Shown in pieces: positions 29,016 through 60,039 of a DNA stretch of 64,000 nucleotides. Location: assembly GCA_002269645.1 (NCBI GenBank), contig NIVC01001826.1:1-64000 (forward strand), in the 5' to 3' direction. Within the stretch, counting starts at the first letter, position 1. Every line of letters begins with the position of its first letter. The notes beneath the pieces were generated by a model. That model had not been told where the DNA came from, ran no database searches, and saw only the letters and a program-made list of their open reading frames with translations. A program made the translations under genes and the position numbers. Source of the DNA: Macrostomum lignano. Lineage: Eukaryota.

Positions 29016-43239
<14,224 letters not shown>

Positions 43240-43641
43240 TTTGTTTTTGTAATTTCAGTATTTCAGCAGTATTATCTGTTGGTATTGTTAGCTAGCTGCA
43301 ACAATTAGACAACTCACAGAAGTATGCAGCTCAGCTTCCAAGAAATCCGAACTTCCAAGAAAGCAAAGTTTAAATAATTATTCAAACAATTTTGATATAA
43401 TTTTTTTTCGGTGGAGACAATATCAAACAATGTCGCGTTGACTATTCTATATGGCTCTTTTTATGATTTCAAGGACACAGCAGATACTCTTAAGAGTTTC
43501 ATCCACTCGATAAATGAGAAGGCAGATTTTTAAGTTGAAAAGTTACGTGCAGCTTGATACTATCGCGTATTCGCGTTTATTTGTCGGCAGAGCAGTCCAT
43601 AATTCTGCTTCTGCCAAGGAATTAGGGAAAGTTCGACTTAC

Positions 43642-43700
43642 CTTCCCATTCATCAGTAGCATTGCCAATGTGTAGTCTGTTATTTGTTTACCACTTCCAT
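43642..43700 (-). other. Putative upstream (5' UTR) exon of APPL
   Basis: Perfect donor AAG|gtaagt at 43642/43641 about 400 nt upstream of the APPL ATG; candidate acceptor ttgttgcag near 43290. The exon 5' end is not defined. Confidence 0.35.
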
Positions 43701-44073
43701 TAAAGTGTATTTTTATTATTTCTATAAACTTTTACTATAATGAAGGATGCAATTGTAAATACATAAACCAGAGCAAAATTTACAGTGCTACATCACCTAA
43801 TACATGTGTGGATAACCAGTGGCGTAACAATTAAAGAGATAGGTCCTTTTAAAAGACGACCCTAAAGAATTTGGGGGACAATTGAAGGACCAAAAAACAG
43901 GCCAGTCGTCAGCTGTTAATTGACCCCTACCCTATATATAGATACACCCCAACACCCGAAGTTTAATGTTTGTGCCCCTGTAGATTGAATATTTTAGGCT
44001 ACTTGTCAAACAGAATTTCTTTATAATGGTAAAAAGGAAACCTAGCTTGATTGAATAGATAAAATATGATGCA

Positions 44074-44263
44074 CAGGGGCGTAGCCAATTAAGGGGGATC
44101 ATGGGGGTCAATATGACCCCCCCCAGCCGGCTGATCCAGGCCAAATTTTCAGCACCCCCCTTCCCCGTCGCAGAGGCCTAGCACCCCCTGCCCCCGGTTG
44201 CCGCTGTGAGCCTGTGACCATGTGACCCCCCCCCCCCAGAAGGAAATCCCGGCTACGCCACTG
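44074..44263. mobile_element. hAT-like MITE, 190 bp
   Basis: TIRs CAGGGGCGTAGCC / GGCTACGCCACTG (1 mismatch in 13) and 8-bp flanking duplication ATGATGCA / ATCATGCA. An 8-bp TSD with CAG ends is typical of hAT elements. Confidence 0.75.
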
Positions 44264-44789
44264 ATCATGCAAGTAGTCTTACTGAGCTAAATTTTAAAAT
44301 TAAAGTCAATAAATCGCTAACAGCCTGCATAAAAACTGCAAAAACCTACATTAAAACTCAAGTTGTCAACTTCATATAGGTTAACGTGGACAACTAGCTT
44401 TCAGACTATCTATAACAAGAGCAATACAGCTAGCAATTGATATAAGCTCTAAATTTCCTGCAAGATAGTCACATGTAAAACCGCACAGTTAACATTAACT
44501 CCAACTTAAATTAGTTGTTTTCTTCAGCAAACTTTACGCAAATATTCAGTCTATTTCTTCAGCTTTACTAAAATTCACATTGCTCAACATACTCGTAAAT
44601 CATTTGCTTGAAAACCAGCAGCGACAATGGAAACTTCGCACACGGAACAATATATGGTCCAATAAAAATTAATTGACTAGTACAAGTAATAACTATATTT
44701 GCTCGAGTCAAGAAAATTTAATTTGGCACATGTTTTTCGAGTAATATTATTGTTAGTTCAGTTTAGCTACACATAATGTTGCACGCGCA

Positions 44790-47479
<2,690 letters not shown>

Positions 47480-48081
47480 AGTGAATTGGCAGGAATGTCT
47501 AGTTTTCAAAGCAATTCACAGAGCAATGCGAGTTATTAGACTCACTATAGGCTTGCTCTATCTAATATACCTGCGCTCAAGCCTCCAGTTGCGACCCCTC
47601 CCCAATCTCCGTCGCGCTCATATTCAAATTTATTCAATTCAATTCAATTTTGTCCACGTGTAACAATGACGACACGTGACCTAGGTGCGCACGGGGCGTC
47701 TACCTAACCTTGCCCAAACCCTGTACCCCTCTGTTCCATTACCTTGCCTTCGCTTTTCTCTTTAATTCATTCTTCTTTCGCTTGCCAGCTGGCACTGCAG
47801 CGGTGTATCTGTGTGTGTATGGAACAACTTTTTCTTTTGCTTGCCTCTGCACCTTGGCTCTTGTCATTTTTTCCTGAGAGCTGAGCTCTGCAGTAGCGCT
47901 ACTTGTAGACTCAACTCTAGGCTAGCGAGTGCTCTATAACAACCTAAAGAAGCTAAAAACGTGTGTTTCGAAAAAAATTCTTGATATTTAATTTGCATCT
48001 TCTTTACTGTAAGTAGAGCATAACGACTTTTAAACGTGAAAATCAAGAAATTTAAAAGCGATATGTACACACCAAGACAAG

Positions 48082-49155
48082 CCGAACCCCTCATTCTACC
48101 CCATCCCGAACCCCAAAATCTACCCCATCCTGAACCCCTCATTCTACCCCATCCCGAACCCCACAATCTACCCCATCCCGAACCCCTCATTCTACCCCAT
48201 CCCGAACCCCTCATTCTACCCCATCCCGAACCCCACAATCTACCCCATCCCGAACCCCTCATTCTACCCCATATGAACCCCTCATTCTACCCTATATTAA
48301 CCCCACATTCTACTCCATACGAACCCCGCATTTTACCCCATCCGAACCCCCACATTCTACCCTATATTAACCCCACATTCTACTCCATACGAACCCCGCA
48401 TTTTACCCCATCCGAACCCCCACATTCTATCCCATCCGAACCCCACATTCTACCCCATATGAACCGCACATTCTACCCCATATGAACCGCACATTCTACC
48501 CCATCCGAACCGCACATTCTACCCCATCCGAACCGCACATTCTACACAATCCGAACCTCACATTCTACCTCACCCCAACCCCACGTTCTACCCTATTCCA
48601 ACCCCGGACCCCAAATTCTAGCCATCCCTGAGACAATAATTTTCCCGACCTCGATCCCATTTCCGATCCCATCTCCGCTCCCATCTCCGCTCCCATCTCC
48701 GCTCCCATCCCCGATCCCATCCCCGATCGCATCCCCGATCGCATCCCCAATCGCATCCCCGATCGCATCCCCGATCGCATCCCCGATCCCATCCCGATCC
48801 CATCCCTGATCCCATCCCCGATCGCATCCCGATCCCATCCCCGATCGCATCCCCGATCCCATCCCCGATCCCATCCCCGATCCCATCCCCGATCGCATCC
48901 CGATCCCATCCCCGATCGCATCCCCGATCCCATCCCCGATCCCATCCTCGATCGCATCCCGATCCCATCCCCGATTCCATCCCCGATCCCATCCCCGATC
49001 CCATCCCCGATCCCATCCCCGATCCCATCCCCGATCCCATCCCCGATCCCATCCCCGATCCCATCCCCGATCCCATCCCCGATCGCATCTCCGATCGCAT
49101 CCCCGATCGCATCCCCGATCCCATCCCCGATCCCATCCCCGATCCCATCCCTGCT
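48082..49155. repeat. Adjacent C-rich satellites: about 21-bp CCCCTCATTCTACCCCATCCCGAA-type and 12-bp CCCCGATCCCAT
   Basis: Directly visible. Confidence 0.9.
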
Positions 49156-49844
49156 CCCATTCTCTATCTACCAGCTGCAGCGCTTTGATAACTCTGAATA
49201 ATCTGGTTGAAGGCGGGCATGCAAAAGGCGCTCCACATTCCAACAGAATCTATTCAATGCACCTTGCTGAAGAAACTTCCCAAAACTAGATTTGAGCAGG
49301 CGTCCACCGGCAGACTCTGTAGCTACCCAGCAGGCTGATCCCACCCACTAATATTTTGTTGCTGGATACGGCGAGCAGATTTCAAGCGGATTAACAGCAG
49401 AGACTCTGAGACTCCCAATCCCTTGAGAACCCCGGGAGAATTTGATATCCAAGCCAGCGAGTAGTCTGCATGAAGAAAGCTTTCTAAGACGGAGAATTAT
49501 AAGGCTCTGCTAGACTCGAAAACTTTGTGATTATCAAAGATTAGAGAGAGATATTTTCTGCTAAAACGAGTAAAAGAGGCAATAATTTAAAGGCAGAAAA
49601 ACTGACTTTAAGAGAAGAGAATTGAATTGGAAATTGCTAGTAAACATGCTTGAGAGACATTGTCTACTTACCAATTAAGCTTTTCATAAGTGGTACGAAG
49701 GTATTTTGACTCAGAGCCAGAAATGAGACAAGTGAGCATTTGTGCAAAGTTGACTTTTTAGTTAGAAAATACTGCTTTCAGCTATCGAAAACAGTCTGAC
49801 CTACAGGCGGACAGGCAGACACTGACACTAAGACAGACATAGAG

Positions 49845-50020
<176 letters not shown>

Positions 50021-50555
50021 ACAGGCGTCAGTAAAGGGACAACAGTACTCAAGCGCAGGTAAGAATTGAGGAACAGAGCAATGCAAAGCACAAAAAGCAG
50101 TCCAGAGCGAGACTCATGCTAAAGAATCGATCCACAGAAAAGAATATCCTGCCTCCTGTTGCATGCACCCAAACGCTAAGTTCTATAAAAAAACTTGTTC
50201 GTCTTCCCTGAAATTGAGAGAAACTTTCATGGATTTTCTTGCCCGGGAAAGGCAGCAGACTGAGCTGCAACCTGCCAGTTAAAACCAACTCATTGCTACT
50301 AAGCTGACACGATGTTTTTTTGCTTGACTTTCTTCGCATCCGAAGCAAATGCAACGTCAAAGTCAGTCCAGATAATGGCAAGGAGCTAAAAGGAGGCGAT
50401 AGACCGATGGGTGGGGGGAAAATTTGGCACTCTGCTGAGTAAACACGGGAGTGCAAGGCGGCTGCACTTCCTGCTTTTATGAAGCAAAGAAATTTAGAAA
50501 TGTTCCTCTGCTCACCGATCTCACAGGAAAGAATCTACAAATTTGATGTAGCTGA

Positions 50556-51252
<697 letters not shown>

Positions 51253-51256
51253 CCGG

Positions 51257-51300
51257 CCAATCAGACTGCAGCCAATCAGGCCGGCTCCCATCTGGATAAA
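51257..51300 (+). promoter_or_regulatory. Probable core promoter of the neuropeptide gene: two CCAAT boxes and a TATA-like GATAAA
   Basis: CCAAT at 51257-51261 and 51272-51276, GATAAA at 51295-51300, about 110 nt before the ATG. Confidence 0.45.
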
Positions 51301-51407
51301 GGCCACTACCCCATCCTCGAGCAGTCAGCTTCCCCGCTGCATCTATTGGAGTCTCACTCTCTATACTGAGCAGAACAGCCTGAGCAGTCGTTAGAACTGA
51401 AGCCGCA

Positions 51408-51767
51408 ATGTCCGCAGTCTCCGTTCTGGTCGTATCGGCCGCGCTACTAATTGGCGCCACTCTAGCGGCCCCAGCCTCCCGGGTGCCTCATCACGGCTAC
51501 GAAAGTCGCCAGCCGCATCGCCTGGCTGACGAAGGCCTCGAGGAGGTCACGGAGCCTGGCCGCCAGTTCCCCGGCTTCGAGCTGACGCCGGCCCAGATGC
51601 AACTCCTGGCCGACGCTCTAGTCGAAATGTCGCAGAGCTCGGAGGCTGAGCTGCCCAATCGCTACGGCATTCTGCCGGCGCGCGGCCGCGGCGCCAACAA
51701 GAAGCGCCAATTTTATCCTCTGCGCGGAAAGAAGCGCGGCGGCATCTTCCACCCGCTGAGGGGCTGA
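51408..51767 (+). CDS. Neuropeptide precursor (119 aa) with predicted amidated peptides pQFYPLRa, GGIFHPLRa and possibly YGILPARa
   Basis: ATG with hydrophobic signal peptide (MSAVSVLVVSAALLIGATLA), acidic spacer, then KKR-QFYPLRG-KKR-GGIFHPLRG-stop: basic cleavage sites plus Gly amidation donors. GC-rich codon style like other exons; AATAAA at 51800-51805. Confidence 0.88.
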   Translation: MSAVSVLVVSAALLIGATLAAPASRVPHHGYESRQPHRLADEGLEEVTEPGRQFPGFELTPAQMQLLADALVEMSQSSEAELPNRYGILPARGRGANKKRQFYPLRGKKRGGIFHPLRG

Positions 51768-52189
51768 AGCCGCCCCCGCCCACCCGACCTCATCCAAGAA
51801 ATAAACTTCTGAGCAAACTTCTGAGTTGTAACAGAAAGCTCACTACCCCAGCAACAACAATTCCCATCAAATGTTTTGTGCGCCATCTCTGTCAATTTTC
51901 CAGTTGTCTCAAGTTGCGAAAAAACAAGAAAAATACAAAATTGACTCCCCGTCGCCGATAAAGTGCGCGCTTGGAATTCGAATATTAAGGCGCATAGCAA
52001 CTGAACCCGCAGAGTGCTTGTTTATCTTCTTTTACGATGCAAAACCTGCCAAAAACATGCTTTTAATTTTTTCAGCAATTATAGTTTCTGCTTTTTTACT
52101 GTGCGGCTTCTGCCGATGATTAAAGGTGGAATGAGAGAGAAATATGGCGCACACAGCTTTCAGGTAGTGGCGGCAAGCTTAGGAAAGTG

Positions 52190-53412
52190 GCACTCGATAT
52201 TAGGGAAAGTGGCACCCGATATTAGGAAAGTGACACTCAACATTAGAAAAGTGGCACTCGATATTATGAAAGTGACACTCAACGTTAGGAAAGCGGCACC
52301 CGACATTAGGAAAGTGACACTCAACGTTAGGAAAGCGGCACCCGACATTAGGAAAGTGATACTCAATATTAGAAAAGTGGCACTCGATATTAGGAAAGTG
52401 ACACTCAACATTAAGAAAGTGGCACTCGATATTATGAAAGTGACACTCAACATTAGGAAAGCGGCACCCGATATTAGGAAAGTGACACTCAACGTTAGGA
52501 AAGCGGCACCCGACATTAGGAAAGTGATACTCAATATTAGAAAAGTGGCACTCGATATTAGGAAAGTGACACTCAACATTAAGAAAGTGGCACTCGATAT
52601 TATGAAAGTGACACTCAACATTAGGAAAGCGGCACCCGATATTAGGAAAGTGACACTCAACGTTAGGAAAGCGGCACTCGATATTAGGAAAGTGGCACCC
52701 GACATTAAAAAAGTGGCACCCGATATTATGAAAGTGACACTCAACATTAGGAAAGCGGCACCCGATATTAGGAAAGTGACACTCAACATTAGGAAAGTGG
52801 CACCCGATATTAGGAAAGTGACACTCAACGTTAGGAAAGCGGCACCCGACATTAGGAAAGTGACACTCAATATTAGGAAAGCGGCACCCGATATTAGGAA
52901 AGTGACACTCAACGTTAGGAAAGCGGCACCCGACATTAGGAAAGTGACACTCAACATTAGGAAAGTGGCACCCGATATTAGGAAAGTGACACTCAACGTT
53001 AGGAAAGCGGCACCCGACATTAGGAAAGTGACACTCAACATTAGGAAAGCGGCACCCGACATTAGGAAAGTGACACTCAATATTAGGAAAGCGGCACCCG
53101 ATATTAGGAAAGTGACACTTAACGTTAGGAAAGCGGCACCCGACATTAGGAAAGTGACACTCAACATTAGGAAAGCGGCACCCGACATTAGGAAAGTGAC
53201 ACTCAACGTTAGGAAAGCGGCACCCGACATTAGGAAAGTGATACTCAATATTAGAAAAGTGGCACTCGATATTATGAAAGTGACACTCAACATTAAGAAA
53301 GCGGCACCCGATATTAGGAAAGTGACACTCAACATTAGGAAAGCGGCACCCGATATTAGGAAAGTGACACTCAACATTAGGAAAGCGGCACCCGACATTA
53401 GGAAAGTGGCCC
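52190..53412. repeat. 21-bp minisatellite of two alternating variants (AGGAAAGTGACACTCAACATT / AGGAAAGCGGCACCCGACATT)
   Basis: Directly visible. Confidence 0.94.
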
Positions 53413-54569: not shown

Positions 54570-55428
54570 CGAAATCTATAGACTTGCAAGTCAAATCTAC
54601 TCTAGATCTATAGATTCGTGTGACTCTATATCTACTCAGATAGATCTATAGACTTGCAAGTCAAATCTACTCTAGAGCTGTACACTCGCAAGTCAAGGCC
54701 TACTTGAGATCTATAGACTCGCAAGTCTAGATCTACTCTGGATCTATAGACTCGCAAGTCAAGATCTACTCTGGATCTATAGGCTCGCAAGTCTAGATCT
54801 ACTCTGGATCTATAGACTCGCAAGTCAAGATTTACTCTGGATCTATAGGCTCGCAAGTCAAGATCTACTCTGGATCTATAGACTCGCAAGTCAAGATCTA
54901 CTCTGGATCTATAGACTCGCAAGTCAAGATCTACTCTGGATCTATAGACTAGCAAGTCAAGATCTACTCTGGATCTATAGACTCGCAAGTCAAGATCTAC
55001 TCTGGATCTATAGACTCGCAAGTCAAAATCTACTCTGGATCTATAGACTTGCAAGTCAAGATCTACTCTGGATCTATAGACTCGCAAGTCAAGATCTACT
55101 CTGGATCTATAGACTCGCAAGTCAAGATCTACTCTGGATCTATAGGCTCGCAAGTCAAGATCTACTCTAAATTTATTGACTTGCAAGTCAAGATCTACTC
55201 TGGATCTATAGACTCGCAAGTCAAGATCTACTCTGGATCTATAGACTCGCAAGTCAAGATCTACTCTGGATCTATAGACTCGCAAGTCAAGATCTACTCT
55301 GGATCTATAGGCTCGCAAGTCAAGATCTACTCTAAATTTATTGACTTGCAAGTCAAGATCTACTCTGGATCTATAGACTCGCAAGTCAAGATCTACTCTA
55401 AATTTATTGACTTGCAAGTCAAGATCTT
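54570..55428. repeat. 33-bp minisatellite GATCTACTCTGGATCTATAGACTCGCAAGTCAA
   Basis: Directly visible. Confidence 0.94.
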
Positions 55429-55814
55429 CCTGAAGGCACAAAGAACGCACTCTAGTGCTGTTCCAAGCAGCCTCACTAGTTCTGTCATCATTAGACTAAT
55501 TGACTCCATAGCTGCTATCGATTTGCAATCACAGTTGCAATTCTAGCAATTATTCTAGCAAATCTATTCAGCTAACAAAAGATTGTTACTGCAATTTGAC
55601 TATCTGTAGTTGGTCATTTAATGAAACGAAAAAAGCGAAACAAAACATTTGTGTTCGTTACAGTTCCGCTCATTGATCTGTCTGCTTATTTAGATAGATA
55701 TAAATGATACACGGCGCTGTAGCAGGTGATGTCCGTGTCTGACAAGTGATTTTCATGTCTGACAAGTGATGTTCGTGTCTGACTAGTTGTGTCAGTGTCT
55801 GACAAGTGATATCC

Positions 55815-58033
55815 CTATCAATAAGGTGACATCCTTATCAATCAGGTGACATCCTAATCAATCAGGTGACATCCTTATCAATTAGGTGACATCCTAATCA
55901 ATCAGGTGACATCCTTATCAATTAGGTGACATCCTTATCAATCAGGTGACATCCTTATCAATCAGGTGACATCCTAATCAATCAGGTGACATCCTAATCA
56001 ATCAGGTGACATCCTAATCAATCAGGTGACATTCTAATCAATCAGGTGACATCCTTATCAATCAGTTGACATCCTAATCCATCAAATGACGTCCTTATCA
56101 ATTAGGTGACATCCTTATCAATCAGGTGACATCCTAATCAATCAGGTGACATCCTTATCAATCAGGTGACATCCTTATCAATCAGGTGACATCCTAATCA
56201 ATCAGGTGACATCCTAATCAATCAGGTGACATCCTAATCAATCAGGTGACATCCTAATCAATCAGGTGACATCCTAATCAATCAGGTGACATCCTAATCA
56301 ATCAAATGACATCCTTATCAATCAGGTGACATCCTAATCAATCAGGTGACATCCTAATCAATCAGGTGACATCCTTATCAATCAAATGACATCCTTATCA
56401 ATCAGGTGACATCCTAATCAATCAGGTGACATCCTAATCAATCAGGTGACATCCTAATCAATCAAATGACATCCTTATCAATCAGGTGACATCCTAATCA
56501 ATCAGGTGACATCCTAATCAATCAGGTGACATCCTAATCAATCAGGTGACATCCTAATCAATCAAATGACATCCTTATCAATCAGGTGACATCCTAATCA
56601 ATCAGGTGACATCCTAATCAATCAGCTGACATCCTAATCAATCAGGTGACATCCTAATCAATCAGGTGACATCCTAATCAATCAAATGACATCCTTATCA
56701 ATCAGGTGACATCCTAATCAATCAGGTGACATCCTAATCAATCAGGTGACATCCTAATCAATCAAATGACATCCTTATCAATCAGGTGACATCCTAATCA
56801 ATCAGGTGACATCCTAATCAATCAGGTGACATCCTAATCAATCAAATGACATCCTTATCAATCAGGTGACATCCTAATCAATCAGGTGACATCCTAATCA
56901 ATCAGGTGACATCCTAATCAATCAGGTGACATCCTAATCAATCAAATGACATCCTTATCAATCAGGTGACATCCTAATCAATCAGGTGACATCCTAATCA
57001 ATCAGGTGACATCCTTATCAATCAGGTGACATCCTAATCAATCAGGTGACATCCTTATCAATCAGGTGACGTCCTAATCAATCAGGTGACATCCTAATCA
57101 ATCAGGTGACATCCTTATCAATCAAATGACATCCTTATCAATCAGGTGACATCCTTGTCAATCAGGTGACATCCTTGTCAATCAGGTGACATCCTTGTCA
57201 ATCAGGTGACATCCTAATCAATCAGCTGACATCCTAATCAATCAGGTGACATCCTAATCAATCAGGTGACATCCTAATCAATCAGGTGACATCCTAATCA
57301 ATCAGGTGACATCCTAATCAATCAGGTGACATCCTAATCAATCAGGTGACATCCTTATCAATCAGGTGACATCCTAATCAATCAGGTGACATCCTAATCA
57401 ATCAGGTGACATCCTAATCAATCAGGTGACATCCTTATCAATCAGGTGACATCCTAATCAATCAGGTGACATCCTAATCAATCAGGTGACATCCTTATCA
57501 ATCAGGTGACATCCTAATCAATCAGGTGACATCCCTATCAATCAGGTGACATCCTTATCAATCAGGTGACATCCTAATCCATCAAATGACATCCTTATCA
57601 ATCAGTTGACATCCTAATCCATCGAATGACATCCTTATCAATCAGGTGACATCCTAATCAATCAGGTGACATCCTAATCAATCAGGTGACATCCTAATCA
57701 ATCAGGTGACATCCTAATCAATCAGGTGACATCCTAATCAATCAGGTGACATCCTAATCAATCAGGTGACATCCTTATCAATCAGGTGACATCCTAATCA
57801 ATCAGGTGACATCCTTATCAATCAGGTGACATCCTAATCAATCAGGTGACATCCTAATCAATCAGGTGACATCCTTATCAATCAGGTGGCATCCTTGTCA
57901 ATCAGGTGACATCCTAATCAATCAGGTGACATCCTTATCAATCAGGTGACATCCTTATCAGTCAGGTGACATCCTAATCAATCAGGTGACATCCTTATCA
58001 GTCAGGTGACATCCTAATCAATCAGGTGACATC
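55815..58033. repeat. 20-bp minisatellite ATCAGGTGACATCCT(A/T)ATCA, about 2.2 kb
   Basis: Directly visible. Confidence 0.97.
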
Positions 58034-58803
58034 CGATCTTTGAGTAAAAGGTGATACATTTATCTAACAGGTAATGCCACTAGTAAAATGTAATTTTGAG
58101 TGCAATAGTTAGTATTCCTAATGAAAACATCAGTGTTCATGCACCTGAATCTGTCTGTAACCCTATTTCGCTTTATTCGCGCGCAGCCAAGAAGCACAAA
58201 AGAAGAACTGGATTTCACCGACTCGCTTTCAGGCAGAAGAAACGTGACCAGAAGCAAAAGCAAACATACAAGATTTTCAAAATCAACGGACAACACAAGC
58301 TACTCTCCTCGAGAGCTCGGCTTGACCAATTCCCTCATCTGAAGATGAAGCAGGAATTCTGCTTGAAAAAATTCAAAAAGCAGCCGAGAAGCAAACAGGA
58401 AAGCAACAGAATGCATGGTCATTAGCGTAATAAAACAGTTTCTTTGATAGGAATAATCTTTTTTCGGGGATATTTTTCCCACGGCCATATAGGTTGTACA
58501 AGCCATGCAGGGCCCGTTGCACTTTAACTAAGATTAATGCAGCTCAAATAAAGATTATTGTGTTATAGTTATAAATATAGACACCTGGTTCCCCTCTGAG
58601 CAGTTGAACAAACTTCCAGATGAGCAAATGTAGATTCTGCATTGCAAGGATTTGCTCAAATCTTTTTTCTTCTTGAGTAGCTAATGCATTGGGTAAACAG
58701 GAAATATAGAAAAATACATCATGATACAATGAGATGGATATAGAAGCAAGAAGTTCTATTTCATTTTTGAAATATGCATGGATGTGCGTGGATGTGTGGT
58801 ACC

Positions 58804-59500
58804 ACTGCTCTTGGTACAGGGTACACACTGCTCTTGGTACAGGGTATACACTGCTCTTGGTACAGGGTACATACTGCTCTTGGTACAGGGTACACACTGC
58901 TCTTGGTACAGGGTACACACTGCTCTTGGTACAGGGTATACACTGCTCTTGGTACAGGGTACATACTGCTCTTGGTACAGGGTACACACTGCTCTTGGTA
59001 CAGGGTACACACTGCTCTTGGTACAGGGTATACACTGCTCTTGGTACAGGGTACATACTGCTCTTGGTACAGGGTACACACTGCTCTTGGTACAGGGTAC
59101 ACACTGCTCTTGGTACAGGGTACACACTGCTCTTGGTACAGGGTATACACTGCTCTTGGTACAGGGTACACACTGCTCTTGGTACAGGGTATACACTGCT
59201 CTTGGTACAGGGTATACACTGCTCTTGGTACAGGGTATACACTGCTCTTGGTACAGGGTACACACTGCTCTTGGTACAGGGTATACACTGCTCTTGGTAC
59301 AGGGTATACACTGCTCTTGGTACAGGGTATACACTGCTCTTGGTACAGGGTATACACTGCTCTTGGTACAGGGTATACACTGCTCTTGGTACAGGGTACA
59401 CACTGCTCTTGGTACAGGGTACACACTGCTCTTGGTACAGGGCACACACTGCTCGTGGTACAGGGCACACACTGCTCGTGGTACAGGGCACACACTGCTC
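58804..59500. repeat. 23-bp minisatellite ACTGCTCTTGGTACAGGGTA(C/T)AC
   Basis: Directly visible. Confidence 0.95.
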
Positions 59501-60039
59501 TAATTAAAACAATACAAAGTAGTGTTCTGAATACAGTAATGTGCATCACTAAGGTGTCCGTTAGAAAAACGGGCAGAGATTCAATTCATAAATAAAACAT
59601 GAAGCACTTTGGCAAATGGGTAGTATGTGCTGTTTATCTACTGAATCAGACAGAATATTCAATCAGCTCTGGCTGAATTTGAGTTCATACAAAGCCATAA
59701 GAGCGAAATAAATATGTATTGACTTCTTCAGTCAAATTTTAAAAGGCCGAACTGAACCAGATCAGAGAAAGTCAAAATATCTCCGCAAACTGGTACAAAA
59801 ACGGTAAAGTATAACTGTCTATCTACAGTATGTTTATTTAAAACCGATCAACTGCCATTCAGACCTGCCATTCAATTTTGACAAGTTTTTTCCACCTAAC
59901 CCATGCGTGTAACCCATTGCTCTGGTGACTTTCCTAGAAATCATGCCCTCCTGCCAGCTGTGTAGCCTCTGCCTCTGCACACAAGCCCGCCAACATCACT
60001 TCCTGACTGAGTATACTCATCCTTTACTATCATTCAGGG

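Follow-up and report, generated by a model that had tools for sequence, protein, structure and literature searches.

The window considered here is a stretch of 64,000 nt from the flatworm Macrostomum lignano (GenBank assembly GCA_002269645.1, Mlig_3_7; contig NIVC01001826.1). On its plus strand, at positions 51408–51767, lies an open reading frame (ORF) that very probably encodes a precursor of amidated bioactive peptides, and whose predicted products we tentatively place among the spiralian-type tachykinins. An earlier note, made from the letters of the window, had described the precursor as unannotated. This is literally wrong, as GenBank holds a gene model at this position of Mlig_3_7, encoding an identical protein. 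The sole database relative of the precursor, 98% identical to it, is the M. lignano entry 'hypothetical protein BOX15_Mlig015485g1/g2', the name carried by its paralogues. The gene itself has been modelled already, its function is without annotation, and a literature search for Mlig015485 found no paper. Since Mlig_3_7 was annotated solely on the basis of RNA-seq transcript assemblies, with ORFs called by TransDecoder (PMC5730564), a transcript of cluster Mlig015485 exists.

The ORF translates to MSAVSVLVVSAALLIGATLAAPASRVPHHGYESRQPHRLADEGLEEVTEPGRQFPGFELTPAQMQLLADALVEMSQSSEAELPNRYGILPARGRGANKKRQFYPLRGKKRGGIFHPLRG-stop, and an in-frame TGA is found 9 codons 5' of the ATG (for the coordinates of all features see Table 1). 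Mean Kyte-Doolittle hydropathy is 2.35 for residues 3–21 and -0.87 for the remainder, and cleavage of the signal peptide is likely around TLA/AP. The spacer that follows contains 11 acidic (D/E) against 4 basic (K/R) residues among about 62 counted. In residues 52–57 of the spacer (51561–51578) we noted the pattern R-QFPGFE, the start of which resembles KKR-QFYPLR and which is without a Gly-basic end; it may be a remnant of another peptide copy or a coincidence. The last 37 residues form a cassette with the order NR-YGILPARG-RGAN-KKR-QFYPLRG-KKR-GGIFHPLRG-stop. This order bears out the two peptides that the earlier note had predicted, (p)QFYPLR-NH2 and GGIFHPLR-NH2, and confirms its placement of YGILPARG between monobasic sites, with a single Arg on each side. 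The computed [M+H]+ values are 805.436 for (pyroGlu)FYPLR-NH2, 895.526 for GGIFHPLR-NH2 and 788.478 for YGILPAR-NH2.

Table 1. Features assigned to the precursor gene and its immediate flanks (window coordinates)
Feature	Position	Strand	Basis
Prepropeptide coding sequence (CDS), single exon, stop included, 119 aa	51408–51767	+	ORF list, translation, GenBank gene call
Signal-peptide-like segment, residues 1–21 (MSAVSVLVVSAALLIGATLAA)	51408–51470	+	Hydrophobic core, small residues at -1/-3
Acidic spacer propeptide, residues 22–85	51471–51662	+	Composition
YGILPARG, weak first paracopy, possibly decayed (YGILPAR-NH2 if processed)	51663–51686	+	Alignment with first mollusc tachykinin copy
KKR, predicted prohormone-convertase site	51699–51707	+	Sequence; same in paralogues
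QFYPLRG, predicted to give (pyroGlu)FYPLR-NH2	51708–51728	+	Dibasic on both sides, Gly amide donor; same in paralogues
KKR, predicted prohormone-convertase site	51729–51737	+	Sequence
GGIFHPLRG, predicted to give GGIFHPLR-NH2	51738–51764	+	Final Gly directly before stop
Two CCAAT boxes (GCCAATCAG), at 51257–51261 and 51272–51276	51257–51276	+	Putative NF-Y sites, core promoter
TATA-like GATAAAG, ~110 nt 5' of the ATG	51295–51301	+	Sequence; invariant in all three loci
AATAAA, putative polyadenylation signal, 33 nt past the stop codon	51800–51805	+	Sequence

Following established prohormone biochemistry, the signal peptide would take the prepropeptide into the secretory pathway, where a prohormone convertase would cut at the two KKR sites, followed by removal of the basic residues by a carboxypeptidase and by PAM-dependent amidation at the exposed Gly. 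The expected products are QFYPLR-NH2, probably cyclised to pyroGlu, and GGIFHPLR-NH2. Processing of YGILPARG is doubtful, because its single-Arg flanks have no basic residue at P4, P6 or P8 and the Arg that follows it (R94) is His in both paralogues; this copy is probably decayed or its peptide inefficiently made. Taken together, the precursor possesses a signal peptide, convertase sites, Gly donors, a repeated motif and a small size, as generally looked for in precursors of amidated peptides, and the reading as a neuropeptide or peptide-hormone precursor holds on every one of these sequence features.

We found that the duplicated motif is not due to chance. We translated the 64-kb window in all six frames and looked for F.P.RG with a dibasic site or a stop directly after it. 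There are three matches, all of them at this locus; two lie 12 codons apart in the 119-aa ORF and one is a coincidental antisense match in the same GC-rich DNA. The expected number per window, as obtained from mononucleotide shuffles, is 0.04, and on these motif statistics (3 against 0.04) a chance ORF was rejected.

Mlig_3_7 carries three near-identical copies of the locus, namely the one in the window and two others (L001 and L002), which are syntenic with it and have its upstream neighbours too. The genome of M. lignano is known to have been duplicated on a large scale, and three copies are consistent with this. The CDS is identical across the loci at 355 of 360 nt, with three synonymous and two non-synonymous changes. 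The proteins of L001 and L002 are identical to each other and differ from that of the window at two residues, L39Q, which lies in the spacer, and R94H, which immediately follows YGILPARG, while the two dibasic-flanked peptides are unchanged. Over the whole transcription unit (51230–51860 compared) the three copies are ~99% identical, as against ~88–97% with many indels in the surrounding DNA, a difference that fits a functional unit. Because of the small number of differences (only 5, at ~99% identity), a dN/dS comparison between the paralogues has no power, and a ratio of 3 synonymous to 2 non-synonymous changes is no proof of purifying selection. This would leave room for a product that is not a neuropeptide, be it a peptide secreted by some non-neural tissue (e.g. 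a reproductive or adhesive gland) or a translated ORF with its dibasic/Gly pattern unprocessed, and some planarian prohormones do occur in reproductive organs (spp-10 and ilp-1 in testes). We nevertheless consider such a product improbable, as a signal peptide, an acidic spacer, duplicated KKR-x(6-8)-RG units and a Gly at the very end make up the canonical layout of amidated-neuropeptide precursors, and their combination by chance is very unlikely.

Regarding the elements around the CDS, the second CCAAT box is the same in L001 and L002, the first reads CCAAC there, and the AATAAA is kept in both despite an adjoining 12-nt indel. These putative promoter and poly(A) elements would delimit, as read from the sequence alone, a compact Pol II transcription unit without introns, some 0.5 kb in length. 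The G+C content of the CDS is 66%, with a value of 0.75 at third codon positions and 0.43 in the 3' flank.

Assignment of the peptides to a family

A Pfam scan of the precursor gave no family, even at an E value of 10, and the database searches described below returned no homologue from outside M. lignano, so that a classification has to rest on the peptides themselves. The earlier note had emphasised that their ending F-x-P-x-R-amide departs from F-x-G-x-R-amide, the strict tachykinin consensus of protostomes. One part of this stands, as in FYPLR-Gly, FHPLR-Gly and ILPAR-Gly the Gly is replaced by Pro. The implied departure from tachykinins does not, since accepted tachykinins and tachykinin precursors contain the same pattern, as in FGFAPMRa of the oyster and in the segments ..AFVPTRG and ..TFIPSRG of the octopus TKRP precursor (BAD26598.1). 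On the sequences compared, F-x-P-x-R-amide is already present inside accepted spiralian tachykinin precursors. Many other accepted spiralian tachykinins likewise deviate from the strict form, which illustrates that F-x-G-x-R-amide is mainly an ecdysozoan consensus and appears too strict for Spiralia.

The relaxed spiralian pattern is F-x-x-x-R-NH2, often preceded by Gly, and both QFYPLRG and GGIFHPLRG conform to it, with an aromatic residue at -5 and an amidated Arg. In YGILPARG the Phe is replaced by Ile, yet the Y-G prefix of the scallop peptide YGFHALRa is kept. The motif is present in several paracopies, two of them with KKR flanks or a terminal Gly and the third with monobasic sites only. 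Peptides available for comparison were YGFHALRa and NYGFHALRa from scallop (Patinopecten), pEYGFHAVRa from Anodonta, FGFAPMRa, ARFFGLRa and FRFTALRa (Cragi-TK1-3) from oyster (Crassostrea gigas), and, among annelids, QPPQGFHAVRa and MDSNQFFHMRa from Platynereis, LSRGFYAARa from Capitella and GPPMGFHFVRa from Hirudo (all PMC6880623 supplement). FGFAPMRa of the oyster has been detected by mass spectrometry (MS), and FRFTALRa is given with a mass in the main text of the same study (PMC4200219). GGIFHPLRa differs from the core GFHA[LV]Ra shared by scallop, Anodonta and Lottia mainly by an exchange of Ala for Pro.

The earlier note had instead drawn a parallel to the natalisins of arthropods. As far as the pattern is concerned this is correct, with FYPLR-Gly and FHPLR-Gly agreeing with the natalisin pattern FxPxRamide/FxxxRamide and, in FxPxRamide, with the consensus of Drosophila natalisin (PMC6880623). 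Orthology to natalisin, which would imply that the split between tachykinin and natalisin is older than the protostome radiation, is a different matter and appears most improbable. Descriptions of natalisins and their receptor are limited to arthropods and tardigrades, and the system is read as the outcome of a panarthropod duplication; from annelids and molluscs only DTKR-type receptors are known (PMC6880623). The natalisin paracopies of Drosophila are 15–24 residues long; most insects have 5–15 copies, Tribolium has 2 and tardigrades have 1 (PMC6880623). M. lignano has 2–3 copies of 6–8 residues in a precursor of 119 aa, so the long paracopies of natalisins are missing; copy number alone does not exclude a natalisin, as Tribolium and the tardigrades demonstrate. 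Because FxPxRamide occurs inside ordinary spiralian tachykinin precursors, the motif does not discriminate, and we rejected a natalisin orthologue on taxonomy and precursor layout. Given that spiralian tachykinins are loose in sequence and natalisins are specific to Panarthropoda, a spiralian-type tachykinin is the more parsimonious family.

We then compared the precursor with four mollusc tachykinin precursors (oyster, octopus, Lottia-1 and Lottia-2) and with 11 non-tachykinin precursors from the same oyster supplement (PMC4200219), the latter including sCAP, RxIamide, Wx3Yamide, WWamide, PXP, NPY and PKYMDT. In a MAFFT alignment YGILPARG falls under the first mollusc tachykinin copy (FGFAPMRG, FGFMGSRG, FGFVGTRG) and GGIFHPLRG under the terminal copies (FRFTALRG, FGFHAVRG). 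The precursors of oyster (...FRFTALRG-stop) and Lottia-2 (...FGFHAVRG-stop) likewise end on the Gly of a tachykinin copy. Aligned by Smith-Waterman with the tachykinin precursor of the oyster, the 37-residue cassette reached a score of 54 over 35 ordered residues (z 7.2), which was equalled in none of 300 shuffles. The similarity persisted when every cleavage and amidation residue was kept unshuffled (p = 0.0005) and with permutation only inside each peptide core (p = 0.015). The 11 non-tachykinin precursors gave z values of 2.1 or less. With hhalign the same register was obtained, copy 1 being paired with Cragi-TK1 and copy 2 with Cragi-TK2 (P = 0.014). The support for a tachykinin at the level of the precursor appears real, and it comes from one species and from short motifs. 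In the oyster an MS-detected 'spacer' peptide, FNNDVEFPLVRNN, aligns with QFYPLRGKKR of M. lignano (51708–51737; EFPLVRNNKR vs QFYPLRGKKR); this peptide may represent a tachykinin paracopy that has decayed in the oyster and lost its Gly amide donor.

The sCAP precursors among the controls bear on another possible origin, a derived pyrokinin/sCAP-type precursor (FxPRLamide/FPRMamide) with the last two residues transposed, i.e. PLR for PRL. An F-x-P core is common to both, and pyrokinin-like prohormones (ppl-1) have been reported in planarians. However, the PRXamide ending F-x-P-R-[LMV]-amide is not found in the M. lignano peptides, where Arg is terminal and not penultimate, and three mollusc sCAP precursors gave z values of only -0.7 to 1.1. 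In addition, sCAP peptides follow directly after the signal peptide and precede a Cys-rich domain, which is the opposite layout. With the wrong terminal residue and the wrong precursor layout this origin was rejected as highly improbable.

A number of observations weigh against a tachykinin and have to be set beside the Pro in place of Gly in the strict consensus. Motifs of five residues converge easily. The probability reported by hhalign for the oyster alignment is only 3%. The tachykinin precursors of octopus, Lottia-1 and Lottia-2 have z values of 1.1–1.5 (1.45 for octopus TKRP, not significant), so that one of the four mollusc precursors is significant and three show no similarity above chance. 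A phmmer search against 1.84 billion representatives and a word-indexed homology search both found only the M. lignano paralogue, and a profile built from three mollusc tachykinin precursors and the two M. lignano proteins brought up no sequences other than those of oyster, Lottia and M. lignano, with no further flatworm among them. The precursor protein was found on none of the Logan (SRA) contigs searched. Furthermore, a review from 2019 states that no tachykinin has been discovered in flatworms (PMC6880623), and a flatworm-neuropeptide review of September 2026 covers many families without tachykinin being among them; this absence fits a loss of the system in the phylum.

The lack of homologues outside M. 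lignano in these searches, the three mollusc precursors without similarity above chance and the missing reports of flatworm tachykinins speak for a lineage-specific amidated family, undescribed so far, of Macrostomum or of flatworms in general, in which FxPLRamide is convergent with tachykinins and natalisins and which has its own receptor outside the tachykinin clade. We regard such a family as the most serious competitor and still as rather unlikely. The ordered similarity to the oyster precursor survives shuffles that retain the processing sites, all three copies fit the spiralian tachykinin templates [FY]G[FI]xxxRG or FHxLRG, and the C-terminal layout is common to two mollusc tachykinin precursors.

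Among the families weighed, the peptides would most likely be spiralian-type tachykinins. For the explanation as a whole, with tachykinin membership included, the chances come close to even, and the precursor being a tachykinin orthologue is likewise an open bet at slightly under even terms. For this gene we infer how the precursor is processed, that neurons express it, and which receptor and role its peptides have: as flatworm members of the spiralian tachykinin (TKRP, F-x-x-x-R-amide) family, the peptides would have a neuromodulator or myoactive role through a tachykinin-type rhodopsin-beta G-protein-coupled receptor (GPCR).

Possible tachykinin signalling in flatworms

Tachykinin signalling is an ancient peptide system of bilaterians, and Macrostomum is an early-branching, genetically tractable flatworm in which transgenesis and RNA interference are available. 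If the peptides are tachykinins, Platyhelminthes would have a first candidate for this family. A tachykinin ligand would then have been retained at the base of the phylum at the least, which would help to date the losses of tachykinin in planarians and parasites and provide a concrete ligand for deorphanising flatworm GPCRs. If the peptides are not tachykinins, they would define a new flatworm family, and under convergence with tachykinins this would be a new peptidergic signalling system and not a divergent tachykinin. Either outcome is incremental rather than transformative, and the present evidence is at the level of motifs.

Most flatworm neuropeptide precursor families are little like those of other bilaterians, as Koziol and colleagues are said to have concluded in 2016; a lineage-specific family would agree with this. 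The earlier note had named a match to a described flatworm family as a finding that would speak against it; in the supplements of Collins et al. 2010 no described planarian prohormone matches the precursor. P[LAMIV]RG is present in none of the S. mediterranea prohormones or MS peptides of that study, and none of its planarian families ends on x-P-x-R-amide. Similarly, 30 Taenia npp orthologues (supplement text) include none with P[LAMIV]RG or an x-P-x-R-amide ending. The comparison comprises these two catalogues; the lists of McVeigh 2009 and Koziol 2016 lie outside it, and an earlier npp label is possible. Searches of literature full texts for FYPLR, FHPLR or PLRamide brought up no paper of relevance, and those for Macrostomum together with tachykinin gave incidental co-mentions only. 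On the receptor side, one monogenean transcriptome has been reported with a tachykinin-type receptor (PMC9645230), and the word 'tachykinin' occurs 0 times in a Fasciola paper (PMC6114109).

Surrounding DNA

Upstream of the precursor gene lies an (AGAT)n microsatellite of ~174 units (50557–51252), which ends a few bp before the first CCAAT box and also precedes the gene in L001 and L002, and a shorter (AGAC)n stretch is located at 49831–50024. Downstream, a 42-bp minisatellite with 29 copies and 90% matches (52179–53408) yields long ORFs on both strands, one of 492 aa ('KVTLNIRKAAPDIR...') and one of 436 aa; these are spurious and not genes. Further tandem arrays were found at 54574–55427 (33 bp x 26), 55806–58034 (20 bp x 111) and 58798–59501 (23 bp x 31). 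The 8 kb downstream are largely satellite-like, and the copy number varies between the paralogous loci.

The upstream neighbours of the gene in L001 and L002 are located on the opposite strand and encode an EF-hand protein (EF-hand_7, with a faint FSTL1-type EF-hand) and a BAR-PH-PID (APPL-like) adaptor. The region of approx. 42700–49200 on the minus strand of the window aligns to these two neighbours at 90–95% identity.

Comparison with known peptide systems

Prohormones of planarians and parasitic flatworms (npp, spp, mpl, ppl) are likewise small secreted precursors of amidated peptides. In contrast to the planarian families listed, the M. lignano precursor has the x-P-x-R-amide ending. The natalisins of arthropods and tardigrades show the same five-residue C-terminal pattern and the same amidated Arg as the M. 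lignano peptides; they differ in being restricted to Panarthropoda and in having a dedicated receptor that arose by duplication, whereas M. lignano is a spiralian.

Tachykinins of octopus and of annelids (Urechis, Platynereis, Capitella) likewise consist of F-x-x-x-R-amide peptides between dibasic sites. Two of the octopus copies are FxPxR-Gly like those of M. lignano, and LSRGFYAARa of Capitella resembles QFYPLRa. The octopus TKRP precursor is however longer, has more copies and keeps Gly in most of them (FxGxR).

The precursors of bivalve tachykinins are likewise short (157 aa in oyster, 119 aa in M. lignano), with a signal peptide, an acidic spacer and three short paracopies ending on [FY/I]-x-x-x-R-Gly, and the oyster peptides are cited as having a deorphanised receptor (Dubos et al. 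2018, via PMC6880623). Differences are seen in the Pro present in every M. lignano copy, in the loss of the dibasic flanks of the first copy and in the N-terminal halves of the precursors, which are not alignable with the oyster. Scallop, Anodonta and Lottia share the core FHxLR/FHxVR with GGIFHPLRa, and in Cragi-TK1 of the oyster Pro occupies the third position from the end of the mature peptide, as it does in all three copies of M. lignano.

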